Source: Ramazzottius varieornatus (lineage: Eukaryota; Animalia; Tardigrada). Taken from it: a DNA stretch of 64,000 bases. The DNA is taken from assembly GCA_001949185.1 (NCBI GenBank), contig BDGG01000006.1:1718827-1782826 (forward strand). The letters are read 5' to 3'. The notes under the pieces are model-generated. The model was given only the letters and a program-made list of their open reading frames with translations. It was not told the origin of the DNA and did no database searches. Position numbers and translations under genes: made by a program. This document shows positions 2,796 through 60,300 of this stretch, piece after piece (the stretch's first letter is position 1; each line of letters begins with the position of its first letter).

Positions 2796-2926
2796 CAAGT
2801 GGCGCAGGCTTACGGCCAGTAACACCGACAGCGTGCGCCACTTGAAAAGGAAATAAACTTGATAAGGATTGCTTTTTCAAGTGGCGCATGTCTCCAGCCA
2901 AACACTTCAGGAATGTGCGCCACTCG
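2796..2926. repeat. Fixed-spacer palindrome family A, 2 units (intergenic)
   Basis: CAAGTGGCGCA-N27-TGCGCCACTTG twice. Confidence 0.9.
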
Positions 2927-5900
2927 AGAGAACGACCCCGGCAAGACCAGTTTTTACGGGAGGGACTTTTCAAGATCGACAGACCGCCTTTCACGTGACG
3001 GTTATTCCATAAACCCATTTGACTGAAATGCACTATATGCCGTTTTATTGATGGCCCTAAACGACGATAGCACAGTTTGCACATGTTCCTCAAGGAGAGA
3101 GTTCTTTTGCATATGTATGTTTACAATGGACATTCATACGCATATGATACCATAAAATCCGCCAATCGACACGACAAACACATGCGAGCGCTTAAAATCT
3201 GTCAAGGGCACGGCAGAAGTGGCCGAACAGGCAACGTTGAAATATATAACAGAGATCCGCTAATCTCGTAGAAATCCCTTGTATGGAGGGACCCATGTGC
3301 TATCCATCAGAAGGGAACGTTGTGTAAACAGACGATACTCCATCTTTGCTTCTGTGTTATTGCACAGTGACTGACAAGCTCGCTCCTCTAGCTCGATCAG
3401 TCTTTTGGCCCTAAAAACTCCTCCATCATGTCATGGCCAGTTTGTTTACATAAGCACGACCTTGCCCCAAGTCCTCAGCTTTTCACCTCGTGATGCTCTT
3501 TACGGCACCGTTTACATTATGCTGAGCACTTTTGTGTTGACCTTCGGTCTAATGTATCATCAACAGATCCGCGTGACTTTCAAGTGACCCTTTCTGCATC
3601 TGGTAGAAGGCGCAAAAGCACTGGGGTTCTGCCATCGCAGGTTCACCGCCCTGGCGTCGCCGCCGGATGTAATATAATTGGCAACACGTGCTAGACGCTC
3701 ACCATTTGCTAAATGTCTTGATGTCCGCTTTCTCTCCAGCAGGAAAAGAAAAACCTCATGAAAGCTTTCCTCCGCGACACGCTGTCGGGTTCTCACATAG
3801 GGACCGCTTTTCTCTTTTTAAGCATCCCTGGTGTCATTGTGTAATGATTTCCGCTCTTGTGTTCGGTTTACTGTTCACCGCCCACAGTAAAATTACGGCA
3901 CGTGTACGTTTACGGAACGTTCAGCAAACTCCAAAAGTTCGGGGGAGAAAATTGTTATTTCTTCCCTTGTTATTTCTTCCGAAAATTCAGGATGGAATCT
4001 TGAGGTTTCACGGTCGCTGAATTCCATGGTCCTCATTGCTGTGATCGTCCGCTTGTTGTGTGGAATGACAATGCAGTAAAAAAGTAAATGACTTTATGAA
4101 ATTACAGCAAGTGTCAAACCATAGCATGTGTCTCGGGCTTTATGGAGTTGATGCGTTGACCTTACGCAACTATCACTTAGCCTTTCGATACTGTGAATTC
4201 GAATGGAACTAAGCTCTTGGAAAAAGAAACACATGGAACAATTGGATTAGCATTTCAGACGTGGAGTGGGCCTACAGTAACATCGCATTTCTATTCAGTT
4301 GCAAACAATGACACTGAGAGAGGTTTCTACCGGAAAAGACAGAGTAATTCGTATCACTGACGCGTGACCTCTTCTTTACTTCTTTAGAATCTTCACGTAA
4401 TAATCGCAGTTTCTTCTCCGTGATTTCCCTTCCCATTTGGCACGTGCATGTTATTCCAGTGGGAACTCTGGCCATGCTTTGATCTCATCAGTCATCAAAG
4501 CCTTCCACTGATTTCCAACGACGCTCGAGTCGTTATGCAACTTATCTTGTCGACTAGTATATGCTCAAATCTAGACATCCTCTGCAGGCGTCGATTTGCT
4601 TGTTGAAATCTCAGTAACTTCAAGACCGAAGTCGTTTCATCTTCGCCTCCTGAAAGCTTGGACTGGCGGTTTCCTCCACAGTTCCGTGTGACAGGCATTG
4701 GAATCTGCGATCGAGGAACTGCTCGATTGACTAGGGAAACATCACAAGAACTGCAACGGCGCTAATTTGTCTCCGGCTTTCACAGCACCAACAACGTCTC
4801 ACTTGGTCTTATGGGATATGCTTGCATATACTGTAATTGGGTGATGTAATGTAAAGAGTGTCTAGACTTAGCCGCCCATCGACTTCTCGATGCTTCCTTG
4901 ATCCTCGTTAAAATCGCATCACCATAAATGTCATGCTCGTTCTGGCTGTCGCCAGTCTGTTTGTTTCTTTGCGTACAAGTGCAGCGCGCTTGGAAGGTCG
5001 CTGCTTCCCTCGTCTCAAGATCTCCATGTGCTGGGGACCTTGACGTGTTTATAGCAACGAAAGGAAATTACATCAAGCACATAAATCTAGCCGACCGTGA
5101 AATGGAAAACGACGCTTGTCATCGATAAGAAATAATGAATTGTCTTTATGGGAATTCCGCTCTACTTTTACAACATTCCGAGCGGAGTGACCTCACTATT
5201 CTTGCTATGTTGTGCGCGGAACGTACGCTGTGGTCGTCGGTTCAGCCGGGAAAACCAAGCAGAAGGCTCATTAAGAAGAGGTAAAAGTCGTACCAAGGTT
5301 TCCGCAGGTTAAGTCGCTCACAATGGCAATGGTCTATCCAACCACTGGGCACAGTTTCTACGAGTTCCGATGCATGATAAATTACCGCATTGTAATGAGA
5401 AGCTACTTCAGCCTGCACCACATATTGAGGTGTCATCTGGCTGTAATGGTTCGATATGTTTGCCCAATCCTATTCCGAACCCATCAAGCGGTATTCTGTT
5501 TCGATTAACTATAATACCGTTATTCAGTCATTGGTCGCGTCTAATCGGACCAGTAGGATGGTTGATGTTGCTCCGGTAAGAGTAGTCCGACCTTATCGCA
5601 AGCTTGAAGTTTGCATTAAAAGTTTGCATCAAAAGTTTGCAATGGTACGATTGACCAGCTGCTGGCGAGTCGCCTTAACGATTATTGGTAAGACTTTCGA
5701 CCCATCAGTGTCAAGTTCGCTCGAAGCAACCCTCCCTTTGGATCTATCATGCTGAAGCAGGAATCTTTAAATTCCTTTCGCATCCACGTTTGGAAAATAA
5801 AACGTTAAAGTGAAGACCGGTCTTCAATGCATGCATGGATCATGGTGGCGCCACCTTCCGGCATAGGTACAGAATTTCTGCACTGTTTAAGCCTGGAAAT

Positions 5901-9155: not shown

Positions 9156-12100
9156 TGGCTGAATGTACTGGAGGCTTTTGTAATCCGGCACTTGATGAGG
9201 CCAATGTGGCTCTTCACCTGCCGTCGACTTTTTATTATTCCTCCGCGTCTCTTGCCGATCTCCCAGAAAACTATCCCGATTCAGTGCTTTGCGCCAACTT
9301 TACACCGAACATCACTGCTCCGCCTGCTGTTGAAATGGGGCACAACAGTCTGCTTTTGGCCGTGAATATCTATTATGGATTGATTTATATTGTGGGCATG
9401 TGCGGTAATTCCCTTGTGGTAAGTCTGAGTAAAATAGACTCTCAACAGCTTCGCCAGCAACGCTGTAATTCCGCCCCAGATAAACCTCTGCATTAGTTGT
9501 GTTTCATTCGTCTCTGTTATTTTTCTATAAATAAAAAAAGCAGCAGGTTTTCCACAGAGAAATTCTGTTGATTCTGACGGTAGATTTTTGTTTTGCACAG
9601 TGGCTGAATTCTAGCATGCTGTGAGCAAAATTGCCGTTTTACTACAAACTGTTCTTCGAGTCGTCGTCACAGGTATTTCTGTAAGGGGTTTTTCCATTTC
9701 TAGCTGTACGTTGTGTGCCGCTATTCGAAGATGCACACCGTTACCAACTTTTTCATTCTGTCCCTCGCGCTGGCTGATATCTGTTTCCTCATCAACGTGC
9801 CATTTCTGATGGTTACGGCCTTCAAGAACAAATGGATATTTGGCGATTTCTACTGCAAAATGTAAGTCCGTCTTTTGCACCGATTTCCAGTTTGTCTCCT
9901 TGGGCAAAGACCTCGTGTGCCAACTGCGCCACTAAGGGTGATGATGGAGACGACAGAAAAGCAGCAGGCGATAATGAGAAGTTAGCCATGTATATTTTTG
10001 CAGCTTTTTGACAATGACAACTGTCAACCAGTTTGCCTCCAGTTTTTTCCTCCTAGTGATGAGCGCTGATCGATATTGTAAGTGTATTCTCTGCTCTAAA
10101 AGACACTTTATTTCGATCGTCCATTTTCCGCTGGTTTCTTACCACGTTTTTTTCTTTCTTACCCTCCACAGTTGCCGTCTGGTAAGTACCACTCTGGTTT
10201 GTCTAATGAAGACTGTGGGTCATCATTCCAGTGCGTCCTTGTAGGTTCTCATGAGATAAATTTGACCCTCTTTTGTATTCTCAACAGTCACCCCATCAAA
10301 AGCAATAAATATCGCACTGCTAAGGCCGCCATCGTTGTTTGTTCCGCTATCTGGGTGACCTCCGTCATATTGAGTAAGAGCCATCTTAAGTTACATTGTG
10401 ATCAAATATCGGTTCTTTCATTGGATTCACTCAATATGATATCTGGTCTAACGTCATGAGTCACGATGTTAATTAATTCCAGTGATCCCCGTCTTCATCT
10501 ACGCTGGATTGAGCCCCTACCCTCAGATACCCGATGTCTGTGCTATACACTGGCCGGGAGGAGAATACGTTGATGGAATGCAAGCCTTCACGTTATACTG
10601 TCTCGTGCTGGGCTTCGCCTTTCCCTTGGTCCTCATCGTGGCTTTTTACTCCATGGTCGTCCGACGACTGGGGACACTCGGCCCCAAAACCGTCAATGGT
10701 CAAAGCGATGCCAGGAAAAAGTCACATCGAAAGGTCACTGTCATGGTTCTGGCTGTCGTCACCGCGTACCTCATTTGCTGGCTGCCTTATTGGTGAGCGA
10801 CTCTCCGACATCTTACTGATGAGTCATATCAGCAACAAAAATACTTGGGAACGTTTGTCTCGTACTGTAAGGCTTCATGAAGGCTTCATGAGTGATGTCA
10901 CGGTGCGCGTAGGGTTTACGGGTAGGATGACGCATACAGCACATGCTCACTACGGCGTAATTCGCTAACTTCATGAAGCATGAATCTATTACACCCCGTT
11001 CAAGCCAGATGTGTACACCATTCTCTTCCAAGCCGTTTGAAAAATCAGGTTTGTGCATTCCAGCACAGCTAGCTCATTTTCGTGAAACGGTGGGCAGTTC
11101 TCGTGGCTAGATAACTAGGCCAAGCATAAACCGATCAAATGTTTGGTTTTGCACAAAAGATTATTCGACCAAGGGTGGGTAGTCTTCCGAGCGAGTTCCA
11201 GCTGTTTTCGGCTATTTTCACTTTTGCAAAATAGTGACTAGACGGACCCAAGCGACCTATGGCTCGTTGTGTAGACACTTGCATATCTCGTCGTTCTGTC
11301 CAGCACTCTGTTTTGATTACCTTAGTTTAAAAATTTGAAAAGTAAAGTCTGTTTTTGAGGTTCTGAAAAACATAGAGGAAACACGACCCCGTATTCGTCG
11401 TTTGCTCTGGGTGTCAGCGGTTCCCGAGCCAGGATTTTTTTGCGCACTTTCGCTGAAACTGGGATGCATTTAAATTGTGTATATTTTAAAGAGAATAGCT
11501 CAAGGTATCTGACCAAATTGACTAGAAGTCGATGCGGTCCTTGGAAGAGTCAACCGAGAATATTAAAGACGCTGTAGGTATTTGGCTTGAACGCCCTGTA
11601 TGAATGGACTCACCCAGATCGTTTACCGAAGTGGCGCAGGCTCTCGACCAATAACAATGAATGGGTGCGCTACTGTGGGAAACGATCTTGCCAGAATTTT
11701 TTTCATGTGCTAACCTGGGCTGTTTGCAGGATCGCTCAGGTTGTGCTGGTATACTCGAACGTCCTCATGCACAACGAACCAGTCAGCTCGTCGGCCTCAT
11801 CCCGCAACATCTCCATAACCGAACACTGTCTGCGGTACCACAACACTTTGAACAACGTACCTCCGGACGATCCAGAATGGGATTATCGTCAGTCCGTCGT
11901 CGTCCACATCATGGCTTTCCTTCAAGGTCTGTGTTACACCAACAGTGCCGTCAACCCGCTGCTGTACGCCATGCTGAGCGAGAACTTCAAGAAGTCCTTC
12001 GCGGCTGTGTGCTGCGCACGACGTGGTGCCATGGAGCATCTGGCCGTACCGGAACCCAGCGTCTATCAGCGGTCGCGGAACTTTGCGGGGTCCGTACGGA

Positions 12101-12351
12101 GAAAGATTATGGGCGACATCGACCATGACGATGACGGATACGATGAAGACGACAACGCGGATACGATACTGACCGATGAGTCCGCCCGAAAGGGAAACTC
12201 AGGTGCCTCGACGAGCTTTTTGCAAGTTAGTTCAGTTACCAGGAATGGATCTGTCAGGTCGACCGTGTCTTCGCGGTCGCCCGCTGCTTCGAAACGGAAT
12301 GGCTACAAACATGCGGCACTGCCTACTAAAGAACATGAAGATGCGCTTTAA
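9156..12351 (+). CDS. Allatostatin-C / somatostatin-type class A neuropeptide GPCR (multi-exon)
   Basis: Spliced reading gives TM1 GMCGNSLV, TM2 TNFFILSLALAD, WIFGDFYCK, TM3 NQFASSFFLLVMSADRY, FAVCHPI, TM5 FTLYCLVLGFAFPL, TM6 RKVTVMVLAVVTAYLICWLPYW and TM7 YTNSAVNPLLYAMLSENFKKSF. GT-AG introns, including a 10-nt microexon at 10172-10181. Confidence 0.9.
11628..11676. repeat. Palindrome family A, 1 unit (GPCR last intron)
   Basis: GAAGTGGCGCA-N27-TGCGCTACTGT with outer AGATCG/CGATCT. Confidence 0.85.
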
Positions 12352-12974
12352 ACAACTGCAAGAAGGATGGCTCCTACACTTGATATAACCTGCGTATTAT
12401 AACAAACAAGACTACTTGTAGCATGAAATTCTAACTTATTTCATCTCTTTTCATGCAGAAGTTTTACCTGTGTTATTTACTCATTTTCTTCGGCAGTGCA
12501 CTGTTTTATCAAGACTCAAACCGCGGATGGGAGGACGATAGAGTTTTCTACACGTGTAAGAATGCCTGCTGATAAACTGAAGTCTGTCCTGACGACACGG
12601 ACTTACGGTCGAACAATTGTCAATTGTCATCACCTCACAAGCGAGCGGTTTCAGAGCTCACCTCGAAATCTTCGACTTTTGCTCTTTTCTATGATAGATC
12701 AGACCTTCGCGTAACTTTTATTGGGGAGAAGACCGGCGGAATACCACTTTTCAAACTTGCAGAAATTTCGAAATGAACGGAATTTACTGCGACCATCACA
12801 ACAGCCTACTTGAGGCTACCGGTACTTCCCCAGTCATGGGCGTACATCTCACCAGAGATGGGACTGCCGACAACAGAATTGATCTGATTCTACTTTGAGA
12901 GGTTTCTCCCTGTTCGGACGAGCATCCGGTCCATTATACTGATCATACAACATTTAGGATCAGTCTTGGTTTGC

Positions 12975-13133
12975 TACACGAATTCTGGGTGCATTTTGGG
13001 TTCAGTAAAGGTTCATACATGAACCATACATGAAACATACATGAACCCGTTATGTGATATCAATGTCCCATAGACGTATATGTCACATATATGAACCTTT
13101 ACTGAACCCAAAATACACCCAGAATACTCTGTA
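12975..13133. mobile_element. TA-flanked MITE
   Basis: ~45-bp inverted repeats ATTCTGGGTG(C/T)ATTTTGGGTTCAGTAAAGGTTCATA bounded by TA. Confidence 0.8.
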
Positions 13134-13155
13134 GCCCAGGACCGATCCCAAATGT

Positions 13156-13930
13156 TATCAGGCCGAGCGAAGCGAGGCCCTTTATGTCTGTCGGGACGAT
13201 CGATCAATGGACGATCAGATTCTTCGAGCTTTCAGATATCGGAAACACAGTACTGAAAAAAGACACGCCACTTGATCGGGGCGATTAAAAATTTTACTGG
13301 GGAACCGTACTGTGAGTCACAAGTAAAAGTGCTCGCTCTACAATGGTTTGCCTCCTTTGCTCGGCCTTTCCAGTGGTCAGAACCACTAGCTAGTATGGTC
13401 AGTATAATATATCGGAGGCTCTTCCGAGCAGGGCAGAGTCCGACTAGAGACATACGAAAATTCTCAGAAAACTCTCGGTTTTCCTTGGGAGATGCTCCGA
13501 ATAGAGCACTGGGCCGCAGGTCCAAAAGAACGCTTTAACTGTGCTGCGCACATTACCACGTCGCTGTACGCTGCGCTGTGTTGCACAACTTTCATGCCCA
13601 GCGGCTGGGCAGCTGTGCTGCAGATCCACATGGACCTGTTGCGACTGCGCTGCATGTTAATGTACTAAGACATACGAGAATTCTCAGAAAAATCAGCAAA
13701 ATCGGTAGTCAACCCAATCGGTAGTTAACCTAGAGACCGTGGCCCCACAGTACGGCAAAACTCAGATGCTTGAAGTTTGAACACCCAAAAGCTCCAATTT
13801 TTTGTTAGTTTTCGGTACGTGGATCTGCGCGGCAGTCTTCGGCTTCCTGCTGCAATCTGCATGCTGTGCTGTACAAATTTCGCCATTTTGCGCACTGCAG
13901 CTGTGCAGCGCATGCGGCCAGATTCCGTGC
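13156..13930. repeat. Possible Helentron-associated non-autonomous element
   Basis: Starts TTATCAGGCCGAGCGAAGCGAGGCC (hairpin) followed by GTCTGTC; internal direct repeat GACATACGA(A/G)AATTCTCAGAAAA at about 13449 and 13668; GCTGYG-rich tracts. Right end not defined. Confidence 0.35.
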
Positions 13931-15232
13931 TCTAGCTCCGAACAAAGACTGTATTAGCCGCATATCTGACGCTATACCCAGATACGATTTCGTTGTACCA
14001 GGCTTTGCGATCCGACTCTTCGTCGATGGCAAATTGAATTGATTGTTGTTGTTTTCGCTGGCCATTCGGTGTCAGAAAAGTTTGTCCCCAAATTGAGCCG
14101 TCGATACCCATTTACCTGTTAAGAACTGGCAGCCAAGTCGGATGCCGCAGCGTGTCAGCAGACCGTCGCATTTCCGCTCCTGACCCAGTAGTCATCCCAG
14201 GCGACTGCGCAGCACAGACAACTGGTGACGACCGGCGTCAACGCCGGCAGGAATGACGTGAAACTGGGCTGCAGCGTGAACGGCCCGCCACTCCAGCTAT
14301 CTGGCCACGCTTACTTGGTGATCGACCACCGAGCCGTTACAACAGCATCACCATTCCGTCGACTGACACCTCTAAAACAGCGGCGGTCACCGGCGACATG
14401 GTTCCCAAGAGATCTGCGAAGGCTGTTGAAAGCTACAGTGGACGAGACCACATCGACCTGGTCACCACGTCCGATGTTGTTTCAGTTTTTTATTTATTTA
14501 TGGTCTGGAGAAAATTTGATTTACTTTTCGAGACTGGATTGTTTTACTCTAGAGTAAAACTGTACCTAACTTTGGGAGTAAACCTAGATAAAACACTGAC
14601 GTGGTGGCCGTCAGCACAACAGGACACGGCCGTGGCGGGTGTCACCGTGGCGCATGCGGCGGTGGCAGATACAAAGGACATTGCGTTAGACGCTGGAAAC
14701 ATGGTGACGATAATCGCGGGAAGCAAGGAGTAATTAACGACCAAATCCATTGTATTTAAATGCACTAAGATTTCTGACGCTGTAGTTAACTTTGTGAATG
14801 CATGAACCGTCCGATCTTGAACTCGGTCAACAGCGGACCGTCTGTCCGATGACAGAATACCGGCACTATATGATCTTTTTGTTCGAGCTTATTCAAGTTT
14901 TTAACTTCGTTCACGCAAGGTCGATCCGATTGTCTTCCTTTAAGGACGAACGACCATAAGGCAATTTTCAGAAGCTTTTAAGTTCTATGTATAGCCGAGC
15001 GCCACTTTTCAGCACGTAGTGATATTTCTGAGACTGTTTTCATTGAATTCGGCCGTGGCTTTTTGATCTCCACAGCGCGACGCTCGAACAGCGAATGAGC
15101 TCCCCACTTATTTGATTTTGTCCGGCGGACTTGGCGGTGCCAACCTCTGGATATTTTCCCCAGTTTTGGTTGGAGGACAATCAACAATTGACCATGATTC
15201 GCCGCAGCGGAGATAGGGATTTTTGTTTTGAA

Positions 15233-18200
15233 ATGTTGGGAAGTATTCAACTGTTCGTCACATACTGCTCATTACTTCAATTACTTCAGTTATGTTCGGG
15301 TTTCTTTACTGTATCCGCCCAAATGAGGGATGTTCCCAGTGGCGTTACTGTCGTACCGCTTAACATTAACACCACTTTGGTATCGGTGCCCGGAAATTCC
15401 AGGAAGCTAGAGATTTGCTCGACGGGTGCATGCATATCTTTGGGTAAGTGTGCACAATAATTGCGTAGGGAATAATCATGACCAATAATTATGACCAACA
15501 ATTATGACCACCAAACTGGCAAACTGGAGTACCGCTAAACTGATCACACGTGGTAAATTTACAGCGAACCAGTTCTTATCGGCGGTAAACTTTTCCGTGG
15601 ATCCATGCGACGATTTTCAAGCCTTCTCCTGCGGCAACTATATTGCAAGGCATCCTGTCAGCGGGTCGGAACAAGCTTCTGTTACTGGGGATGTGGGTAT
15701 CGAAGCCATCAATAAAATCAAAGGTACAAACGCACTTTGGGATTCTTGTTTCATTTCACGACAATTATTCCATAGCGATGCTGCAACTTACACCATATGA
15801 CAACTACGTATACGACCAGATGGACGCGGAAGTCAAAGTGAAAAGAGCTTACCAGCAATGCGTCAGTAACCGTAAGTCGGGACGCAGAGACTTGACCATT
15901 CTAGTCCGGTTTCGTGCAAGAAGCTAGTGCAAAATAGTTTTTTGCTTCGAGGACTTTCCGAATCGTTCAACGCGGATGCATTACTGACGTACATGGGAGC
16001 GATTCTGCCCGGAGGATGGCCAATGATTACCCCTAACTGGGATCCTGCGCAGTTCGATCTCTTTTCCGTGGTTCTGAATGCGGCAGTATACGGCGTCCAG
16101 CCGTTCTTCGTTACGGAGGTTGTTGCGGATTTCACCAACCCAACCCAAAACCTTCTTATCTTCGCTCAGCCTTCGACTTTTGCATCAAAAGACACGTTGA
16201 ACAGTGAAGATGGGTCAGGGGTAACATCGTCTTACCTTCAAAAGGTTGTTGAGACCACGCAGCTAATTCCCAGCAACACCAGCGGACCTCGTCCGGCGTC
16301 CGCCATTCTAAACGACGCGATCGACATCGTCAACCTCGAAAAAAACATCGCGCTCGTAAGCCAGACTGCTACAGTAGATAGTTTTAACGTTTGCGAGCAA
16401 GAAAACGGATTTGATGGATCAGATCGCTTTCCCAAGTGGCGCACACTGCCAATAGCACTGATATGCGCCACTTCGGAAACAATCAAACTCAATGCTGTAG
16501 TGGCGCAAGCTTGCAGCCGTTAACACCAGGAACCTGCGCCACTTGGTGATGCAGTTCCCGGTTGGCATCTACAGTAAAACCAGACGTTTAAGGAAGGGTT
16601 TTGTAGGCAGGACTCAACTTTGGACAGCAGGAGGACATTTCACTTGCCACAAATAAGACCACGCTCGGATCATTTCAAGACGGGGCGCTGAAACGGTCTA
16701 GCTTGTTTCAACGATTCATTGAATTTCACAGAGCTTTGCTCGCCATCGCCAATGTGACTTTTCGAATCGACAGAAACACAGTAGTTGTTCCGCTTACGTT
16801 TGACGTCTTCGTTGGTCTGGACCAGATCGTCGCTTCCTTAGAAGCTATGGGCGACGAAGGCAAACGGCGGCTGGCGAATTACATTGGCTGGCAGCTGATC
16901 AACGCCAATGTCCCATACTTGTCGAGAGACGTCCAGGAACTTCACGAAAATCACCTACGGAGGATCAGAGTGCTGAAAGAAGACAGTCCGCCAGTTGCGA
17001 ACATAACCGAAAGCAAGTGTATCGGGACAATGCAAAGCATGCTACCCTTGGCTCTCGAAACTCTCTATGTCAGAAAGTATGTTCCTGCGGACCTTCAGCC
17101 AAAGGTATCTTGTTTCAGTCCACTACCTTTCCAAAGCCGTGGCCGTTTAGATCTCTGGACTAACTGGGAAGAGTTCTAGGTTGCCATGTTGATTACTGAC
17201 ACCAAGTTAGGTTTCGCTGATCTGTTGCGGGAAGCCACCTGGATGGAAAACGCAACCAAGATCCTTGCTCTACAAAAGCTCGACAACATGCTTAATTTCG
17301 TGGCTTTCTCCAATGAGGTTGTTAATAACAAAAGTGCGGTAAACACAGAATACAGCCAGGTAGAGTAGATGCACCAGTACTGTCACCTTCCATCGGTTTT
17401 GCGCTTGGTTCAGCCGCACACGTTCGCATCTTCGTAGGTCAAAATCGGCACAACGTTCTTTGATACAGTCCAAACCATTATGAGGTATTTGGTTATCAAA
17501 AACTTGAAGAGCCTGGATAGAGTCAACGTCAGACTGGATCCGTTCGCCAATCCTGTTGACATTACTCAAGCCAACGCCTACAACGATTTTGTCCAGAACA
17601 TCATATGTACAGTACTTGCTATACAGTACACTTCTATTGCAATCATCTGGTTAGGCGGTCCTTGATTTCTCATCCATGTGGCTATGTTTCCGTTTCTAGT
17701 TATCCTTGCGGGTATCCTGGCCCCTCCTTTTTATGACCCTCAAGTTCCTCAGTATGTGAACTACGGAGCTACCGGAGGCGTCATAGGTCATGAGGTCACC
17801 CACGGATTCGACACAACAGGTAGGCTCTCGAAAAGAACACTGGGATGGATCAGTTTTACTGTCACCTTACTGTCAATATTTGCGAACGAGGCTCTAAAAG
17901 CCGGCAGGACCGAAAATGGTGTTTCCTGTTGCTTTACAGTCCGGTCGCTCGAAATCCGTACCAAATTTTCGGATATCAGTTTTGGGCCCACTGTACATTC
18001 ATCATATTACATGGCAAGCTACTTTAAGTGCTAGAATTACCGGTACACAACACACGCATTGCACCGTGCTTTAACTGGTGTGATCAAGGAATCAAGCTGC
18101 AAATAACACACTGCGTGGGCATGGCACGAAGTGGGGTTGAATTTGAATGACTTTCGCGTTGTAGAAAATTTGGTACGGATTCGGGCGACCGGACTGTGGT

Positions 18201-20886: not shown

Positions 20887-21512
20887 TAGTGCTGGCAACG
20901 ATACGGTATACCGATATCGTATCGAAATATACCGAATCTTTGCGATAAAATATGTGGCAGATATCATATCGAAGAAATCGATATGTGACTCATATCGAAT
21001 AACACCATCAGCAAAATCGATATGCCGCGATACGATTTCGATATATCGTTATTTTGCTGAAGGGCAAACTCGGCAATTATATCACATTTACTAAAGACTA
21101 CAGTTGATTTCAAAGCCTTGATCCCTGCCACGGTATGCCGAGCAGGCGAGCACGCTCCGCCCATTCGGTTTTGGTACTAATTGTATCCAGGTTTCCATGT
21201 ATTTGAAGTCCTGGACTCTTGGTACTACCACATCTTTGCTGTATCCGACGCTTTCGATCTTACTAATACTTGATGTGGAAATCGGCTTCTTGGGTTCTTG
21301 GCCTTGAACCCAGTGGAATTCTGAAAAAACTCTAATTGAAAAAATATCGATATATCGCTGCGATATGATACAGTATATCGAAAATACGGTATGGGGAAAA
21401 TATTATATCGAAATATCGATACCGAACGAATATCGAATACCGCGATAAAATACCTGCGGATCTTTTATCGGAAAATATCGTATCGAATTTTATTGTATTT
21501 TTGCCAGCACTA
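20887..21512. mobile_element. hAT-type non-autonomous element with ATATCG/CGATAT subterminal repeats
   Basis: TIR TAGTGCTGGCAA / TTGCCAGCACTA, perfect 8-bp TSD GAGAGAAG, dense short subterminal repeats at both ends. Confidence 0.9.
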
Positions 21513-21646
21513 GAGAGAAGTGTTAGTGTAAAGCAACAACAACCGCGTTACCGCGGCCACTTTTCAACAAACCCAGCAAGATTGCTTCACCAAGTGACGC
21601 ACGCTTTCAGTCATCGACACCTAAAATGTGCACCCACCAGAGAAAG

Positions 21647-33534: not shown

Positions 33535-33539
33535 ACGAT

Positions 33540-42300: not shown

Positions 42301-43499
42301 CAATCGAATGAGGAATATTTGAAATATTCGACCAGATAGCTTTACCGAGCGGCGCACGCCACCACCTAATAATACTGAAAACGTGCGCCACTTGGGCGAA
42401 TGATCGAATTCGGCAAAATCGCTTTCCCAAGTGTTGTAAGCTCCCAGATTATATCACTGAAAGAGAAAAATACACACAACCTACGTTGTTAATCTGTTTC
42501 AATGCGTCTTTGCTCGGCACTGTCCCGTTGTACACTTCATATGCCAAGACGCCATAGCCCCACATATCCGTTGACCACTTATGGCCGCTCTTCCTTCCAC
42601 CACCTCCCGTAGTGTACTCTGGAGGTTCGAGATAGCCTTTAAGGCTGCGGAGCGAAGGCGCCGAGTCAGAATCCGCAGGCGTCACGTAGTCCAGTCCTCC
42701 CAACTTCCATTCACCGGCCTTGCTGACGAAGACCGAGTTGACAGAAACATTGTGGTGAGCCAGACTGGCTGTCTCGTTAAGGAAACTTAGGGCCTTCTAA
42801 AACCATACGAACGAACCAAGTGAACAGGAATACAGAATTTTGAGGAACTATTTTAGTCTGGTGAGAGTCGATCCCTTACAGCGATGTGAAGTAATCCCCA
42901 AGCTAGCAAATTATCGTTCTTCTTCGTGCATTTCTGGACGTATTCCATGACAGGAACTGCAGATTCAGTGACCATATACACCAGTTTATCCGTCTGTAGA
43001 ACACAGAGTAGCTCAAAATATGATTAAGTAGGAACGTTCTGCGTGAGAACTGACAGTGCGTCACTTTGAATGATAGTCCAAATAACAATCAATGAATCAA
43101 GCTTACGAACTTCTAAACCATCGACATATGTGAGGATATTTGGATGGCGCATCGTTTTCAGTCGTTTCATGGACGCTTTCGCTGCGTTCAACTGTAAAGA
43201 AAAAAAGTCATTGTTTCTAGAGGAGCGAAACGCGATCAAAAGAAGAGTCTTGCCCATGAGTCGCCTTGCTTCTGAGTGTCGTAGACGAATACAGAAAATT
43301 CTTCGGTCGTTCCCTACAACAAAACTCAATGAAAAAAATCGGACAGCTGTGAAAAAAATACAAAAAATTCCACCTTCTTGACAGCTTTGTGCAGTATCCA
43401 GAAGGAACAACCAACATAAGAATGGACTTGCTCTTGAAGCTCATATCCGAAATCTTTGGTTGGATCTCTCGAGAATATCGAGGAAAACATCGACGACAT
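39390..43499 (-). CDS. SCYL1: SCY1-like pseudokinase 1 (N-terminal kinase-like), multi-exon
   Basis: [45 protein letters not shown]-repeat region ([50 protein letters not shown]), low-complexity C-terminus with WD motifs. Confidence 0.93.
40360..40475. repeat. Palindrome family A, 2 units (SCYL1 intron)
   Basis: Spacers of 22 and 26 nt. Confidence 0.8.
42346..42394. repeat. Palindrome family A, 1 unit plus a truncated arm (SCYL1 intron)
   Basis: CGAGCGGCGCA-N27-TGCGCCACTTG; a partial left arm ATCGCTTTCCCAAGTG follows at about 42418. Confidence 0.85.
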
Positions 43500-49500: not shown

Positions 49501-51036
49501 CGTAACAGCGAAACCGCAAAAGTCAACGTTTCAGCTTCAGTTTTAGTGCTGTAATTTCCAGTTCACTCGATCGCTAATTTTCTCTGCTCGTCATCGCGAA
49601 CTTTCGTTGTGCACGCCCAGTGGAACAATGGAGTGACAATGATACGAGGAAGATCGGTTATCGGAAGGGGTTTGTAATCAGCAAAGGCATGTCTGATGGC
49701 CATTTGTGAGTTTTGACCCATCTGCGATTACGCTGCTTCGAGAGGAAATCAGATGTGCTCGGGCGACTCGAAGTAATAACTGGCCTGTGGTCACTCGTTC
49801 CGCATTCTGATCACTCATCGATCCTGTATTCTGCCCCCGACTTCCTGGCCGCACTTGAGCCCCTGCGTCTCTTTTTCCGCTTGGATGTACGCGATAGTAA
49901 CCTCATTTGTAGTTTGATATTTGTGTACGCTTTGGCAGAAAGGAAGTTGAATCTGCATCGCGATTCCCGATCGAAGTCTTTCCGAAAGTCTGGCCTCTTC
50001 CTTTATTTTAATCGTTGTGAGTGCGTGAAATGGTGGCTTGTGTTCTTTGATAAGACGGTGAGCTTCTTTCATCGTCTCGTTCGCAGACGTTTATCTATCC
50101 GAAAGATTATTGCCTCATCTTTGATATCGGCGGTAACTTTTACGACCCTGATAGATTTTGATGATGAGTGTCAGCCTAGTTTCCTGCGGCATCTCCGCAT
50201 GCAGGAAGTCATCAATGACGAGCTCTTGCGTGGATGCTTCTTTCATAGTGTGAATTTATGAAGCGGAGAACCTCATTCTCTCGTTAGGTTCGCAAGTATT
50301 TGATTAGGTTTTATTATGATTACGACTTTGAGTGAAAGTCTACTTATGACTTCATTTTTATCTCTCATCGAACCGTGCTCTGTTTTAATTGTAGGTTACC
50401 GAAGCCGAAATCCGTTCCCCGAGGAAGAATCTCAGCGAACGCGGATAACGCCGCCACCTGAAAGCCAACGGAAACGGAATATACTGTATCAACTGCAAAA
50501 GGTGAGATAGGAGGTGTTTGCTAAACGTGATAACAAGAGATTTGATGTGGAAAGCCGTTGGAGAAGTTCGGAAAGTAGTCATCTGTTGCTGGTGTCACAA
50601 CTCGAACGAGGGAAATACAACGAGCTATCAAGTTATGCTGGTCGTCGGGTGGTCGACTTGTTAGACTTGCTGGCTGCATTTAAAAGTGGTTTTCACAACG
50701 TGTAGCTTGGCTGTTCTTTTGCAGTCAAAGAAGGTATGTGATGTGGTCGGAGCGGATGAGAGAAAGAAAGTTTTGACTTGAGAGTTTACTTTGAAGTGTC
50801 GTGAGAAATGACAGATCACTCTCCACCGACCGAACTTCATCCGCGCCGTATGCGTTAAACTTTCTCCATGTCTCTTCCGCAACAATCCTGCCTTTTGTGA
50901 AAACTTTCTGTCACGTTGACTCGTGAGCTGTAAACACTCCGACCAGAGTTTCGGACCTCCTCACTCGGCACGTCGATCTTAAAAGACTGAAATCAATCGG
51001 GACGTCGGCAGATAATTTCACTCGGATTGTTGTTGT

Positions 51037-51157
51037 CAAGTAGCGCACGCTATCAGCCACTAACACTGGCAGCGTGCGCCACTTGGAAAACTGACAAGAT
51101 CGCTCTCCCAAGTGGCGCACCCTCTCAGTCGGTAACAACAAAACTGTGCGCCACTTG
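51037..51157. repeat. Palindrome family A, 2 units (upstream region or 5'UTR intron of SIPA1L)
   Basis: Both spacers 27 nt; closely resembles the 58308 cluster. Confidence 0.9.
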
Positions 51158-54100
51158 ACGTAACGATCTGGAACTATTGAACAGTCTGAGGCTTTTAGAA
51201 TCTGGCAAAACATCTGGCACGACCCTGTTAGGCTGAGTAGTACCTTTAGCACGGTCTTGACTCATCGAGGTTTGGTTGTCTTCCTCTCGGCTCTCGAGGT
51301 GTGAAACTCTAGCTTCATTAGGCCAAGGTCTTCACGTCAAGTATGACGGCGCTCTCTATGAAGAGCGACGAGGATCGTGTAGCACTACTCAGAGACCATG
51401 CGAAACTTTGATGGAAGAGCCACTAAACGGACATGCGAGCTTTGAGATATGCGTACGTAATGAGCTACAGCGTAGTGCTTTGATCAGCGTTGGAAGAATC
51501 TGGAACTTTATGAAGGAAAAGGTGTCAGCTGCTGCGGTGGTGTTCTTGAAACTCTGATGGAAAATCTATATTGATCTGTTTGACTGCGGATGTTATGTTT
51601 TTTCTTTGATTTGATTGCAGCTGGTCCAGTGCATCTTTGACTTCTTTTGGCCCAGTTTCCAGATGCAATATAGAGCTCTAGATTGAAAAGAATAAATCAC
51701 GGTAATGTCCAAAGCCAAAAGTCACAGCAAACATGGCAAGCAAGACGAGTAATGGATGTGATGCCATGCAGCAACAGCAAAGCAAGGCAAAGATCGCTCT
51801 TTCAATACGACTAATGTCCGTCAAAGCAATAAGCCCACGTTAGTCAATATAAGGCCAAATAACCTCGGTCGCAACAAGGCGACAGCTGTTTCCGCTGACG
51901 GAACTCACAACCGCTGGTCTGTTTGGAGAAAGGTGATCGGAATGCGTAAACATGGTCAGCCGATATACCAACGAAGAGAAGCCGAAGCCAGAATACGGAT
52001 TTGATGAACCAGATGGAAAAATCTGCAATTTTCGGGAGAAACTTTTCATTGATCGATAACCTCAAAGTCATCAGTGGAAAAACAGTTCGGACAGGCGGGA
52101 CACCACATAACTAACTTTCGAACCTGAAAGTTGGGTCCACCCGAAAGTCTGCTGTATCCGTTAATTGAAGGATCGAATGAAACGTTAAGCACACGATAAC
52201 ATTTTGAACTGCTGTTAGATCGAGGATTAGACCGGTATGTGTGCCGATGTTGGGCGAGATTCGGTTACGAATCGATGAATTTTGAGCAGGGACAGGGTCA
52301 GCTTGTCCTGTTGCGGCTGAGCTCGCGAGGAAGTTCGCCAATTTAATCCTGGTAATGACAATAAATCGAATTTGTTGATGAGAGTGAACTTGAGGAAAGC
52401 CAGATGTGGTGGGAGGATGTGTCTCATACTCGTATATACCCACGAGTATACGTATTTCAAAGCAGATGATTCGACGGAGGCTGGAAGTGTTTGTCTCTGT
52501 TTGATCAGTGTTACTCAGTTCACTGGCGCTTTGTGCATGTTTGTGCCGGTTTGTGTCGCTGTTTCAGCATTTGTTCCACCGGTGGCTTTCACGCCTTTTC
52601 CTCCGTTTACATGCTACGCATTCGCATATGTATCAATGCAACCACCTATGTCAATATTACCTTCATCAAAGGAAATGAAATTTGGTCTGCATTATCCTAC
52701 GTTTGGGCTATTGGCTTTGCAGTCCTGTTTTGATTCACTGCTTGGATTTGTTTGATGATTGCCTCATTGGAATGTGGAAGAGGTATGACGCTGGGAGTAT
52801 ATCTGGAACTCAAAAGCTAGGGCGGCATCATACTGGGCTAAGGTACGAGGCGGGCAGAGGATATTTTGGGAAATTCTTGACTGAAACGCAGCGGGGAAGA
52901 CATTATAAGAAGCTGCTGGATGTGAATGACGATAAGTGCATTGGTGAGGCTCTTATAGAGATTGATGAGGGAATCCTTACTGCTGGTGCTGTGAAACGCT
53001 CTTGTGGATCCGCATCCTCTAATCATTTAGACTGTGACTAAGTGGCTGGAAATGAGACGAACAGGCTCCCGCATAAAGGAAGTTGCTTGAGGGGTACTTA
53101 TGTTTTTGATGCATGACATCATCGGTCTCTTTCAAAATATGGAACAACTCGAAATTTCACTTAGGAGATTGTGAGAGTACAGAATTCCAGATCGAGTTTT
53201 GAAATTACGACAAGTTGTACAAGCAGGAAATGATGGGGCTGAAGATGCGAAAAACAGGTTCGAAAATGCACGGCTGAAACGGATTTTAGTTTCGATTTCA
53301 AATGTAGAAGATGGATTTGCACGATATCCGTCTGCCTTTATGTCTCCTGTTGGTCTGGACCCGATCAGGCATCGTAAGACGAATCTTGATTGAAGTTTAA
53401 TGCAGAATGGCGACTTGCAGCTTGCTTTCGGAACCACTTCGATTAGTCACATCGGTCAGGCGTCGGATATGAGTGCTGTACGGTTCCGTAGTGGATAAGG
53501 AGGGTATGGATGCTACAGACGGAGGGAAGAATGCAGGAATGGACATGGGCACTTGTCCGCGACTGTACTGATCCTTGACCCTCGCTGAAGATGGTCCAAG
53601 CGGAGGTTCTGCTGACCTGCTACTCAGTTTTCCGCTTTCTTGAGATGTTGTGAGTGCGCTTGCCATGAGAACACAGTGTCCGGTTTCTCCTGGAAGGTCG
53701 GGAAAGAATTGTCCTAGAAAAATCTCACAGTTCCATGCTGACACGTGTCGAAGGTTGAATTTGGTGTTGTCATTGATATGATGCGTAATTGTAATCACAG
53801 CGCGAATAACATGCAATGGAATAAAATTTTTTTCCTTTTTCCACCCGAATCGTGATCGATTTCAAAGAGGTTTTGTGAATGGTGGAGGTATGATGAATGA
53901 ATACTTGAGATGCCTATTCTCGGGGAATTCCAGCAAATTTGATGGATTGGAAGCGATGAGAAGAAAGGGGGATATAATTGCAGACGGTGATGGAAGAATG
54001 TGTGAGAGCGTTTTGATCGTTGGCCAGTTGTGAAAGACGAGAAGTTGAGAGCAGTGATTTCCATGATTTGTCTGAAACTTATATTGAACGTATTCATTGA

Positions 54101-54376
54101 ACGAAACTCATATCTTTTTATTCGTTGAATCGTTGTCGAATGATAACCCCATGTGTTCTTCTATTTCTCTGCAGAAACTACGAAACATGTCCTCAATCAA
54201 ACTGGAGCAGAGGTTTGAATGAAGGCGCTCAAGAGTTCAAAAGTGGAGTAAAAGCCTTTGAGGAAAAGAATTGTGCAGTGAACCATGCTTGGGGCTGACA
54301 TTCATGGCTGAACCGGGAAGTGGAAGAAAGTGGATAGTAGCCTCGAAGAGCGCAAAGTGGACCAGGAAGAAAAAGA

Positions 54377-57300
54377 ATGTCAGCCACGGTTGTTGATCCC
54401 AGCTTTTATTACCAGCATATGCGCCAGGAAATGCCCGTAAGTACCTCACAATACACTGAGCCAACTACACCCTCCCGCCCCCTCTTTGCAAATTTTCCTG
54501 AAAAGTCTTTCTTTCGCAACGCTTTCTACTTCATCACACTACTTAAATCACGGTTCAAATGTTTTGGTTTGTCAGAAAAATCGAAATCCCCGAAAAACTG
54601 AAACTTTTGACTGATGGGAAGATTTCGAACATGGTTTACTGTGTAACAACAAAGTCTCGCTGAGCTTTCAAAATGACAGAATTGTGGAAAATGACTCTGA
54701 GCGATGGGGAAAAGGGAATGTTCGCGGACGTGGATTGAGGTTTTGGTTGTTGTGGTTTCAGGTTAGCGGCAACGCGGCGCCGCCGTACCGGGAAGGAGGG
54801 ACAGCGGCAAGTGGTGGGTACGCGCGCAGTAGTCCGCGAGTAGCTCCTCGGCAATTAGGGCCAGTTGTTCGTGCGGTTTACGACGATAGGTCGTTAAGTG
54901 GCGGCACTAATGCTGGGCCTGCTGCTCTGCCACCAAGCAAAAGCCAGCACGTCAAGTACGCTGACGCGGAAATTATCGCCAATCCACTGGCCAAACGGGC
55001 TTATTACCGCTCCGTCAGCAGCCTGGACATTTCACTGGAGGAAGACGACACGCCGCGACCGACCTTGTTGAAGGAATATAGCGGAAGTGCTTCCTCCATC
55101 GACCTTGGCAAAACTGGTATGCTTGGACATAACTCACAGAAGTTAATTAGACAATTTAGCTGCCAAAAAACCAGTTTCAAGTACCCCAGTAAAAACCGTG
55201 GCTATGCGGACTTGTATGTGATTGGAACTGGACCTTGGTTTCTGTTTACAATGGTTCAATGCTTTTGTTTTGACTCTACAGTTGGGGGAAATATCCGCGC
55301 AATACTCGAGCAACTTCGACATGGCAAAACTGTCAACGGCAGTGCAAACTCGCTGTCGTCTTTGCCCAACTCGGACGGAAGTGGTGGATCGGGAAGCGGC
55401 AGCGGCTTCTTGTGCAATGCCCGCTCGAAGAAAAGCAAGGTAAAAATCCTTATCGTGTCACTTGCAGACAAAAATCATCGCAGAAAGAGGTCGATAGAGG
55501 GGGAAGAGGCGAGAGGCGAAATTTACTGATAGTGGGCTTGATGATTACAACAAAAACCTGAGACATGATACGGATTTCGAAGTCGATTGGTTTTGTAGGT
55601 ACCCAAGAAGAGTTCGTTGCGCTCTCGGTCTTCCATTTTCCGCAAGATGCGTGGTGGAAGTCAGAATGATATGGAGATCCCCGGGGTGGACGTGGACTCA
55701 CTGTCAGCCGCGTCGACCACGCAGTCAGCAGCCAGTGACGCTGAACGGATTCGCCGCAAGATCTTTGCTCACTTTGACTCGCAGAGCCTGCTAACCAAAC
55801 TGGTGCCTCCGAAAGATGTCCACGCACAAGGCCTCCGGAGGAACACGACCACCGGTGCGTCCGCCGCCAACTTCACCACCCGCATCGTCCTACCTTCGCA
55901 GAGCGATGGTAGCGCCGATTCGGGGATGGCTGAAGATATCGACCAAGGTAAACCCTCCACAGCGCATTTGTCCAAAAATAAAAAGACACTTTCCACTCAA
56001 AGTCAGAAGAAAATTATCGGTCAAACGCTGCTCCAAAAAAATAATTCCACGCTTGCTTGTCTCGAACGTCGAAAGAAATTCAAGCACGGCAAGAAACTTG
56101 AGCGGCTCTGTTGAGAATTAATATATGGAAAACCGTAGAAAAGTTTGCAGATATGTAGTGTGGACTGAAGCAATGTACACGTACGAATAACCGAAAACAT
56201 GAAGTCCGAAGAATGAAACTGAGACGGTCTGCGAGCGCGCATATTTGACCTGACTTTTTTTCAGGTGACGGAAAGTCCAACCAGCTGTTGCTCAATTGCC
56301 CCTACTTTCGCAACGAGATTCACCCCGAAGACTGCTCACCCTCCGTCTCGCCGTCTGCCTTCTCCGGTGTCATGATGCGTCGGCCTGCTCGACAGCGACC
56401 TTTGCCTTCAGCCTTCCGTCCCCACTACGGCTCGTTAGTCTTGGAGGAAGAAGAGCCCGTGGGTGGACAAAGACCCCTCCGATGTGCACACCAGATGCAG
56501 CCCAGGTTCGAGCATCTGGACCACGGCGCACTGTACTACCGGAAGTACTTCCATGAACAAGCGCACAGTAACTACTTTGGGGTGGACGAAAAGTTCGGCC
56601 CGGTGGCTGTCAGTATCAAGAAGGAGAAAACCGGCGACCAGAACCATAAAGTCATGTACCGGCTAATCGTCCGAACCACCGAGGTAAATTCTCTTTTAAT
56701 TTGTCATCCACCTGCATACAGGATGTGATACACTTCTTGTAGCTCGCAAGTATGCAGGAGGATGAAAGCACGGCGAAAGCGTCGATAACATCACGCACAC
56801 TCACATCAGACACCTGCATACAAAAGCTGCCGAGGTGTCACGGTACGTTTGTATGCAGGTGTGTAAAATCACGGTGAAGTGCCGGTAACACCGATGAAAT
56901 CGCGTCGAACACCTGCATGTCATAGTGTAGTGGCGGACGTACGTTGTTATTTATGCAGGTGGATGAAAGGACGGTATATATTACGGAGTTATCTAATGTT
57001 TGTTGTGTTTGTGTAGCTTTCGGTTCTTCGTGGTGGGATATTGGAAGATAGTCTTCCACGCCTGAACAAGGAAGCCGTGAAGCCAAAAGACCTTCTCGAC
57101 TGCGTGGTGCCGGAGCTTCAAACCTCTTGTTTACGTCTCGGGAGTGCCGGCGTGAAGACGGAGGACATACTCCTGAAACTGGACGAACAAGCGGTAAGGT
57201 TTCTTTGACACTCGATCGTTATCGTTATGCCGCCTATAATGTTTATTGAGACAACTCCGTGTCATAAAGAGTCATGGGCGGTGAAGGTCGCTTGTGATAA

Positions 57301-60300
57301 TGGTTAGCAATAGTAAACATCAAATATTGCTGTTTGACAAAGCAACGTTGAAGGTGTCGCTTTACGACCGGTGTGTCCCTTTTTGTAGGTGCCGAAAAAG
57401 TACAAAGTGGGAGTCATGTACTGCAAAGCTGGCCAGTGCACGGAAGAGGAGATGTATAACAACGGTAAATTCTCATTAATAATCATCAGAAAACCGAAAT
57501 CAAGATCGATGAAAATTTATGGTTGGAATTTTCTCATAGAAACTTCAAGTCCAGCCTTCGATGAGTTCCTGGATCTACTCGGACAGCGAGTCCGACTCAA
57601 AGGCTTTGAAAAATACCGGGCACAGCTGGACAATAAATGTAAGAGTTCTGAAGCAGTTTGGCTATCTTATCGATCGAGCGAGAAACGAACTCCGTTCAAA
57701 CAATGTTTCCCCTGTAGCTGATTCGACTGGGCTTTACTCCCTGTACACGACCTTCCACGAGTACGAGATCATGTTCCACGTCTCGACCATGCTGCCTTTT
57801 ACACCCAGCAATAAGCAACAGGTGACATACAGCAAACCGTTGACTTGACTTTCCTCAGGTTAAATGATTTGATGTTTCCAACAGCTTCTAAGAAAGCGCC
57901 ATATCGGCAACGATATCGTGACGATCGTATTCCAAGAGCCCGGTGCCTTGCCCTTCTCGCCAAAGACTATCCGATCTCACTTTCAACACGTCTTCATCGT
58001 CGTCCAAGTACAGTTTCCCAACACCGACCGCACTCAGTACCTGTATGTCCTCCCACTCTTTCCATCACGAAACCCATTCAGCGCTAAACTGCGTCTGTCT
58101 TTCAGAGTATCCATTTCACGGTCCAAAGATGTGCCACCCTTCGGGCCTCCCTTGCCGGAAAGCGCTACCTTCAGCCGGAGTACCGACTTTGTCGACTTCA
58201 TCCTCACCAAAGGTAATTTCAGACGTCGCGGTTCCCGACAAATTACGATGAACATTACAAAATAACTGAGTTGGGGCATCGGTAAACAAATTTAAACAGA
58301 TCGTGCTCCCAAGGCGCACGCGTTCAGCCAGTAGCAATAGAAAAGTGCGCCACTTGGAAAGTTAAAGATTGCTTGGCCAAGTGGCGCACTTTCTCAGTCA
58401 ATAACAATGAAACTGTGCGCCACTTGACATGATGATCTGGATGAAGCCGTTTGCCGACATCCGAAGTAACAGAATTAAAAAGTGGTTGATGGTGATTTTG
58501 CTTGTAGTGATTAACGCGGAGAATGCAGCGCACAAGTCCGAGAAGTTCGCCGCACTTGCGACCCGCACACGTCTCGAGTACCTGAAAGACCTGGCCGCGA
58601 ACTATGTGACGCACACCAGCATCGAATCCAGCTTTGGAAAGCTAACGATGTTTTCGTTGTCGACTAAAAAGCGAGACAAGCCTCTGCTGTCGTACCCGTG
58701 CGATGGCTCGATCAAGGGTGCACTGTCGTGGAGCGTCCAAGCCAAAGCTGTCGATATGCCGTTACCGCTCGACGGTCGCATGCTCCTGGGTATTTCGACG
58801 AGCTTTGTAGTGCTGGTGGACCCCTCGACCGGTGCGGTGGTGAAGTTCCTGCCGAACAGCAACATCATGGGGTGGAAAAGCCAAGAAGAAAGGTAACAGT
58901 ATATAGGAGGCCAGGAAACGAAACGTACAAGATAGTTAACCTATGTGGCGCATTCCTTCGGTGTTATTAGCTGAAACCATGCGGCACTTGATATAAACAG
59001 TTTTGTACGTCTCCTTTGCCGGCCTCCCGTTTTCCGACGAAAAATCGAACGACAGAACATTACTTTCCTTGCAGCTTGTCGTTGTATTATCACGTGGGAG
59101 AATCTATCCAAATGATCTGTGGTACTGCCGATGACTGGAAAGAAATCATGCAGCGACTCAAAGCAGTCACAAGTGGAATCGGGGTAACGATAACGAAATA
59201 TGAATTATTTTCTACAATAAATTCAAAACACAAATTACTGGAAAATCACATTTTAAATATTAATATGAAATTCGTGTATTGTTTCAGGTTGTGGACTTGA
59301 CATTGACAAGGAACATTCGCGGTCACCTCGGTTTCCACACCCAATTTAACGGCTTGATTACGGATGTGGACACACAGAGTATCGCTTACAAAGCGGGCTT
59401 ACGAAGAGGCTCATGTCTCCTTGAGGTAAGTGTAACCCCTTCCTTCCCCTTCAAGTCACATCTTGAGACTGACTTACGAGACTCCTCAGTCCAATCATAC
59501 TTATGCATCATCTTGTTTGTCAACATCAGGTTTGTGGTCAGAGTGTCAGTATGATGGACCATGAGACCCTGGCCGATCTCTTACGACGAGCCAACCCCGT
59601 GACCGTGACATTGCTGCCGCCACTTGACAATGGCCTCCCTAGACGGTATGTGTATCGACTTTCATATCTTGAAGTTGGCTTCTGGCTGATTAGTCTGCCT
59701 TGCTGTGATTGACAGAGGGTGCAATCGACCGCTGTGTATCAGAGCGCCTGAACACGCAATCACCAGCACCAACTACGACAACTTGTCCGACTCTATGGAG
59801 AGTGTCCCGCAGGCCGTGTACGTCCAACCGGTGGCCAGTCGATCATCCTCGTCCATGGTGGACGGTCACGTGGCATTCTTCATCAAGTAAGTCTCCCAAA
59901 ATTTGCCATTGTTCCACCACTGTTCGGCCCAACGGAAAAAGGGCAGCTCGACTGACAAACTTGACAGATCGTTTCATCAAGTGGCGCAGTTTTTCATAAC
60001 TGTTGGCTGACAGCGTGCGCCACTTGAGTAATCGATGTTGTCGAGTTTGATTGTTTTGCTAAGTGGCGCACGTAGTCGGTGGTATTGGCTGGATACTTGC
60101 GCCACATGGGAAGACGATCTGGGCGAGTTCGTCGGCCGAGCTCGCAAAGTAATTTCTCAGAAAGACATGAAAATCGAAAATGTATCAGATACAATGAAGT
60201 AATTTATCGAAATTGAATAAGAAGATATCTACTTGTTCTCAACGTTCTTTGTTCTATCCAGGTCCGATAGTTCGCAGCAGAACGCGAAGGTTCTGCCATC

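Follow-up and report, generated by a model that had tools for sequence, protein, structure and literature searches.

Within a 64,000-nt stretch of the genome of the tardigrade Ramazzottius varieornatus (contig BDGG01000006.1, positions 1,718,827 to 1,782,826; hereafter the window) we characterised a dispersed palindromic repeat and found it to be a non-autonomous DNA transposon resembling a miniature inverted-repeat transposable element (MITE). It is short, has inverted termini, duplicates its target site and is dispersed in high copy number, and it therefore has the features by which MITEs are operationally defined. Each core of the element contains two internal 11-bp boxes, the arms (CAAGTGGCGCA and its complement), which are kept two to four times better than the rest of the element and are its sole unexplained feature. 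The arms are probably cis-acting transposase-binding boxes of an old, high-copy MITE. An earlier note on this DNA had described a 49-75-bp unit in which the arms enclose a fixed 27-nt spacer; this unit proved to be only the core of a longer palindrome of ~125 bp with termini of its own.

Anatomy, abundance and insertion of the element

The palindrome does not end at the weaker outer pair AGATCG/CGATCT but extends ~38 nt outward from the arms on each side, up to a terminus that reads TGGGA(CG/GC)TCGGCAAA inward. Homology between copies ends at this terminus, and both ends read TGGGA[CG][CG]TCGGCAAA in the inward direction. From the outside in, each half of the element is made up of the terminus, ~20 nt, AGATCGTTTTCC, the 11-bp arm and a 9-bp stem. 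The 27-nt spacer consists of the two 9-bp stems around a 9-nt loop, CCAATAACA, which forms the centre of the element. As the spacer is thus a stem, a loop and a stem, the whole monomer is a single hairpin-shaped palindrome of ~125 bp, and well-preserved copies fold full-length as single hairpins.

We also recovered the element independently of its arms, by searching for inverted outer 12-mers 80-110 nt apart or for paired terminal 10-mers. These searches returned 15 and 18 elements, respectively, of 106-128 bp, and none in the controls. The arm pair was located by script in 13 of the 15, and an arm could be read in every listed row of the other 18. One to three cores lie in tandem between a pair of termini, usually in direct orientation according to our own reading of the loops. 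Across 264 kb we counted 43 clusters, of which 29 are monomers, 13 are dimers and one is a trimer. Dimers recovered through their arms span ~190-200 bp, compared with the 106-128 bp of monomers found by their termini, and all are non-coding. The copies fall into at least two subfamilies, GACGTC...TGAA and GAGCTC...CAAACTCGAC, the two ends of one element usually being of the same type. In a dimer subfamily, homology spans both cores at different loci, and the phylogenetic structure among copies is weak but real.

Abundance was evaluated by searching the R. varieornatus genome (55,842,812 bases in 200 contigs) with the reversed sequence as a control. Exact arms occur 7,237 times, compared with 20 in the control, and perfect-arm pairs with exactly 27 nt between them occur 638 times, compared with none. 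More than 15 different contigs are represented among the matches listed. Combining the exact-arm counts with the probability of finding an exact arm paired with another exact arm (0.23 genome-wide, 0.32 locally), we estimate ~10,000-15,000 cores, which would make up about 1-2.5% of the genome. Non-arm positions are ~36% diverged from the consensus, which marks the family as old. We found no copies of the unit in a metagenome scan, and no description of the element in the papers that we searched in full text for tardigrade MITEs or for the arm sequence.

The same scan yielded the lengths of the spacers. Besides the 638 perfect-arm pairs with 27 nt, the genome holds 147 pairs with spacers of 10-26 nt and 32 with spacers of 28-44 nt. 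The spacer is 26 nt long in 40 of the 50 pairs listed from the 147, and the greater number of 26-nt than of 28-nt spacers suggests an ordinary deletion bias. In the terminus-anchored set, which does not depend on the arms, the spacer is 27 nt in seven elements and 26 nt in six, and the 35-nt outer segment is at its modal length in 14 of 26 cases. The genome scan that the earlier note had called for places the element genome-wide, but a length of 27 nt is modal rather than fixed. Since the spacer varies in length as much as the outer segment does, the proposal of a geometry-constrained site is not upheld.

To define the insertion site, we set the ends of 13 elements by the best match to the terminal 15-mer and compared their flanks. 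The 2-nt flanks are identical in 6 of the 13 (AT, TT, TT, AC, TT and TA); per site, 17 of 26 positions match, compared with 11 of 52 in control registers, although the sample is small. A 3-bp repeat at the element ends was found in none of the 13. Flanks are A/T-rich among the 100 ends listed. The target-site duplication (TSD) that the earlier note had failed to see is thus present, at 2 bp, once the true ends are used.

The hairpin shape bears on two alternative readings, both raised in the earlier note. The first holds that the unit acts as an RNA hairpin in pre-mRNA, where it would signal splicing or editing or give rise to small RNA. The copies that we checked lie in transcribed introns, preserved copies fold better than shuffles (z of -2.7 to -3.8), and the two mismatches in the inner-stem consensus would be G-U pairs in one orientation. 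A covariation check, however, revealed neither excess pairing nor compensatory change: paired cells amount to 67.2%, against 66.4% in shuffles, a level reached by 36 of 500 shuffles, and one-sided changes predominate. Both orientations of the element also occur within one gene. Since neither covariation between paired bases nor a match in Rfam speaks for it, an RNA hairpin is unsupported and most improbable.

The second reading holds that the unit resembles the bacterial REPIN or BIME elements and moves as a single-stranded DNA hairpin by means of an HUH/Y1-type enzyme. Its wholly palindromic structure, the position of the conserved boxes inside the stem rather than at its tips, and the tandem arrays of cores would all fit. 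As in REP, BIME, REPIN and Correia sequences, we see short dispersed palindromes, single or clustered, with a conserved stem and a variable loop. Those families, however, are bacterial and linked to RAYT or to insertion sequences, whereas the present element resides in an animal, has terminal inverted repeats (TIRs) and a TSD, and is intronic. Cut-and-paste transposition by a DDE enzyme would account for the 2-bp TSD and the defined inverted termini, hairpin covariation is absent, and no HUH/Y1-type enzyme turned up, although none was searched for. We therefore consider this route very improbable: the earlier note was right to see a short mobile palindrome, but what we find is an ordinary eukaryotic MITE, and a likeness to the REPIN/RAYT system is not shown.

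Conservation of the arms and their probable role

The earlier note had also held that the arms are better conserved than uniform decay would predict, and this is confirmed in copies found without reference to the arms. In terminus-found elements, pairwise identity is 0.80 in the arms, 0.51 in the outer segment and 0.50 in the spacer stem. Measured against subfamily consensus sequences, the corresponding identities are 0.86-0.90, 0.66-0.76 and 0.53-0.72. When cores are anchored on one exact arm (n=63), identity is 0.85-0.91 in the partner arm, 0.71 in the spacer and 0.61 in the adjoining outer 12-mer. Overall, with ascertainment bias removed, identity is ~0.87-0.90 in the arms and 0.6-0.75 in other parts. 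Among exact consensus 11-mers in the genome, beside the 7,237 arms (two per core), there are 712 from the outer segment and 335 from the spacer (one per core). The arm itself is unevenly conserved: GCGC hardly changes, whereas positions 1-3 and position 7 (G/A) are variable. Distinct subfamilies carry identical arms. We rejected arm-to-arm conversion within the hairpin as a cause, as the arms show almost no double changes.

From the directly observed anatomy, termini, TSD, copy number, subfamilies, three intronic clusters and extra conservation of the arms, we infer a mechanism of the following kind. The units would be cores of an old, high-copy, non-autonomous cut-and-paste DNA transposon, which would have duplicated 2 bp of target on insertion, in many cases within short introns already present, and then decayed. 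The transposase that mobilised it would have bound the arms as internal (subterminal) boxes. Copying would have continued only in lineages that retained these boxes, while the spacer, loop and outer sequence drifted, and the 27-nt spacer would simply be the inherited inner stem and loop. A role as transposase boxes carries the higher prior because MITE families generally show this pattern. It is also favoured by the identical arms of distinct subfamilies and by the weak phylogenetic structure among copies.

Candidate transposases are available in the same genome, in which we found at least 129 matches to DDE_Tnp_4 (PIF/Harbinger-type), several of them intact. Several DDE_Tnp_4 copies have intact domains in open frames of 427-471 aa with near-identical scores, and a Harbinger-type family may have been active recently in this genome. 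The Harbinger gene in the window was considered as the parent element and rejected, as no matching inverted repeats surround it. The distribution of the MITE along contig C1 is uneven: no terminal motifs are matched at ~4.4-6.5 Mb and no perfect units lie between 4.94 and 6.17 Mb, whereas 6.3-8.4 Mb is dense in both, and DDE_Tnp_4 matches cluster at 5.15-5.52 Mb. The MITE may avoid a transposon-rich region.

Comparison with known elements places the family among MITEs but does not assign it to a superfamily. Human MADE1 is a palindromic MITE of 80 bp, made of two Hsmar1 TIRs around a few bases. Like MADE1, the tardigrade element is very short, non-coding, nearly all one inverted repeat and abundant, with a short TSD. 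Unlike MADE1, its 2-bp TSD is not restricted to TA, its best-kept part is an internal 11-bp box rather than the terminus, its cores are repeated one to three times in tandem, and no parent element is known. With Tourist and Stowaway MITEs and their PIF/Harbinger or ISL2EU relatives, it shares dispersal, diverged subfamilies with common conserved cis-sequences, and genic positions. A genome rich in DDE_Tnp_4 matches that context, but no TIR match to a transposase-bearing copy is shown, and the 3-bp TWA duplication of PIF/Harbinger differs from what we see at the 13 pairs of ends. A 2-bp duplication other than TA argues against both Tc1/mariner (TA) and PIF/Harbinger (TWA). ISL2EU elements make a 2-bp TSD, a likeness that is no test of membership. 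Foldback elements likewise form hairpins from inverted repeats built partly of tandem sub-repeats; the present element is far shorter, has only one to three sub-repeats, and carries them centrally rather than within each arm.

Several observations weigh against the view that the arms are transposase boxes in a MITE. Recent activity is not demonstrable, as the closest genome-wide relatives of the three copies tested are only 74-81% identical. No autonomous element with these termini turned up, although no search was aimed at one, and no empty site was seen; a copy at L004, considered as the empty site for the insert in a DDE_Tnp_4 frame described below, had diverged too far for that purpose. 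Conservation of the arms exceeds that of the termini (~0.76 per site, an estimate), an unusual pattern for a MITE. Decay of the arms is uncoupled from that of the spacer, outer segment and termini (rho of -0.13, -0.10 and -0.03, respectively), and this counts against the transposase-box account because differences in copy age should produce such a correlation. Finally, decay of the TSD implies ~27% divergence since insertion (range 19-36%), compared with ~10% in the arms; the excess of TSD-based age over arm divergence mildly favours constraint acting in place.

These last observations point towards a second reading of the arms, in which a host protein would now bind them and purifying selection would maintain them in place across thousands of copies. 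Candidates for such a protein are a zinc-finger protein with an architectural or insulator role and a domesticated transposase or Myb partner. Arms that are two to four times less diverged than every other part, termini included, would be expected under this reading, as would the uncoupled decay and the old TSDs. The profile within the arm is position-specific and motif-like, with its near-invariant GCGC and free position 7. Compared with the CTCF-type core CCnnnAGnnGGC, the segment AAGTGGCGC agrees with the Drosophila CTCF core AGGTGGCGC at 8 of 9 bases, but the mismatch falls on the conserved AG (which reads AA) and the upstream CC is out of register. Against this reading, selection on ~20,000 short sites would be demanding, and spacer length is under no special constraint.

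Two duplications that took place after insertion also speak to this question. At L027, segments 1501-1705 and 1994-2194 form a direct duplication, 81% identical, of one MITE copy and ~105 nt of its right flank, which makes it a useful natural clock for decay in place. By our own count, the arms differ at 3 of 22 positions, non-arm positions of the element at 17 of 86 and the flank at 23 of 104. In the tandem cores of L010, likewise duplicated in place and counted by ourselves, the arms differ at 2 of 22 positions and non-arm positions at 3 of 38. The arms thus change about as fast as their surroundings, close to the local neutral rate, which fits neutral decay after insertion and stands against selection in place. 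Between selection on lineages and selection in place, our four measures (sibling identity, TSD decay, in-place duplicates and decay correlations) disagree, and all come from small samples. We regard host-protein sites as possible but doubtful.

A specific form of this idea, in which ~20,000 arm boxes were taken over after the old burst as sites for a CTCF-like factor or a domesticated transposase partner, is quite doubtful; if it is true, a transposon would have built a network of paired sites, most of them in introns, within a compact animal genome. Transposon-borne CTCF sites have spread elsewhere, in waves of the short interspersed element (SINE) B2 in mammals. Like B2, the tardigrade family has spread a short GC-rich box resembling the CTCF core; unlike B2, the motif matches only in its 3' half and is known here from sequence alone.

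Copies in the window and their host introns

Allowing up to one mismatch, we found 39 occurrences of the arm or its complement in the window itself, where 1.07 would be expected; exact arm pairs occur five times, compared with none. At the clusters of the earlier note, which had claimed 23 units, we recovered 19 with at most two mismatches per arm; the other four can be made out in the sequence but are more degenerate. The 19 spacers measure 27 nt in 14 units, 26 nt in two, and 20, 22 and 29 nt in one each. The outer pair AGATCG/CGATCT around the arms is present as described, as are monomer, dimer and trimer arrays with a period of 64-82 bp. The copies are as follows.

2796-2926: dimer; cores 2796-2844 and 2878-2926, each with a 27-nt spacer
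11616-11690: monomer; right arm decayed, AGATCG...CGATCT retained
16433-16545: dimer; cores 16433-16474 (20-nt spacer) and 16497-16545; between two + strand Peptidase_M13_N exon open reading frames (ORFs)
21565-21640: degenerate core, absent from the earlier list; left arm CAAGTGACGCA, spacer recognisable, right arm decayed
23829-24020: trimer; spacers of 27, 26 and 29 nt
24513-24633: dimer; first core degenerate, second core 24585-24633
26099-26223: full-length monomer of 125 bp, the best preserved in the window; ends TGAGAC...GTTTCA, flanks AA/AA, core 26137-26185
32947-33073: dimer; within the 229-nt GT..AG insert that splits a DDE_Tnp_4 reading frame
40360-40475: dimer; spacers of 22 and 26 nt
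42346-42394: monomer core; 27-nt spacer
50999-51172: dimer element with outer TIRs; cores 51037-51085 and 51109-51157
58273-58466: dimer element; cores 58308-58356 and 58378-58426; within RNA-supported intron 58213-58507
58904-59029: monomer element; core 58942-58990; within RNA-supported intron 58893-59074
59943-60148: dimer element; cores 59978-60026 and 60060-60108; within RNA-supported intron 59887-60261
63217-63275: exact lone arm with a degenerate outer-TIR remnant (judged by eye); at the 3' edge of a - strand H3-like ORF

The closest relative in the genome of the dimer at 50999-51172 is the dimer at 58314-58441 (79% identity). Terminus-like matches at 5909, 6905, 9264, 22936 and 53692 were rejected as chance matches.

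Intron structure was evaluated by mapping contigs from four RNA studies on positions 56000-61900, where a single + strand gene has at least 15 GT..AG introns, 12 of the 15 listed being 63-104 nt long. The three introns that bear the element measure 182, 295 and 375 nt, are three of the four longest listed in this gene, and exceed normal length by about the length of the element. Their splice sites lie 12-113 nt outside the element in all three cases, and once the element is subtracted 58-170 nt remain, which in two of the three is near the size of an ordinary intron. Splice sites beyond the element and a near-ordinary remainder together indicate insertion into pre-existing introns. The earlier note had placed most clusters within introns; three are now so placed by RNA contigs, and for the cluster at 16433 the position is inferred from the collinear Peptidase_M13_N exons (Pfam) on either side. 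Introns make up 34% of non-exonic DNA in R. varieornatus genome-wide, and a codon-usage exon finder, with a sensitivity of 0.43-0.60, was too weak for use in measuring intron enrichment.

These data bear on whether the element is an introner, whose insertion would itself create an intron by supplying or co-opting splice sites. The intronic placement of most clusters by the earlier note would suit this, a terminus variant, TCGGTAAAC, includes GT, and the insert that carries the dimer at 32947-33073 is suggestive. Here a + strand DDE_Tnp_4 frame (32733-33534) with an in-frame TGA is split right after its HDS motif by a 229-nt GT..AG insert that carries the dimer; the split is clean, with TTCAGGTA on both sides. 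It may be a genuine intron into which the MITE subsequently moved, or itself an insertion. In all three RNA-verified introns, however, the splice sites lie beyond the element and, in two, the remainder is near ordinary size; for these three clusters the RNA contigs rule an introner out, and for the family we give it a next to negligible probability.

Some RNA contigs of run X8 leave the locus inside the element (at 58356, 58439, 60026 and 60039) and pass into unrelated sequence, and one joins 60058 to 58414. These breaks probably arose in assembly, as chimeras joining unspliced transcripts from different copies.

Neighbouring sequences and significance

A different dispersed repeat of ~500-640 bp, unrelated to the palindromic element and with copies 77-91% identical, occurs at the following positions.

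Window, 20887-21512: copy of the ~500-640-bp repeat
L004, 7365-7961: copy of the ~500-640-bp repeat
L012, 1341-1889: copy of the ~500-640-bp repeat
L003, 5246-5712: copy of the ~500-640-bp repeat

The lone arm at 63217 adjoins an ORF of 211 aa (63216-63848, - strand), the product of which has a diverged histone H3 fold preceded by a long N-terminal extension. A degenerate remnant of the element with an exact arm lies at the 3' edge of the frame. H3 and H3/CENP-A chimeras are the best matches of the product in the PDB, with E~1e-12 only, and the similarity ends near H3 residue 100. Judging from these matches, the ORF could encode a centromeric or other H3 variant with its last helix in a further exon.

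At ~1-2.5% of the DNA, the MITE appears to rank among the most abundant single repeat families in the 56-Mb genome of this extremotolerant model, and masking and annotating it would improve gene and intron models. That its boxes are better kept than its termini raises the question of whether protein-binding sites in a tardigrade originated in a MITE burst; should this not be so, the family would represent ordinary transposon biology.

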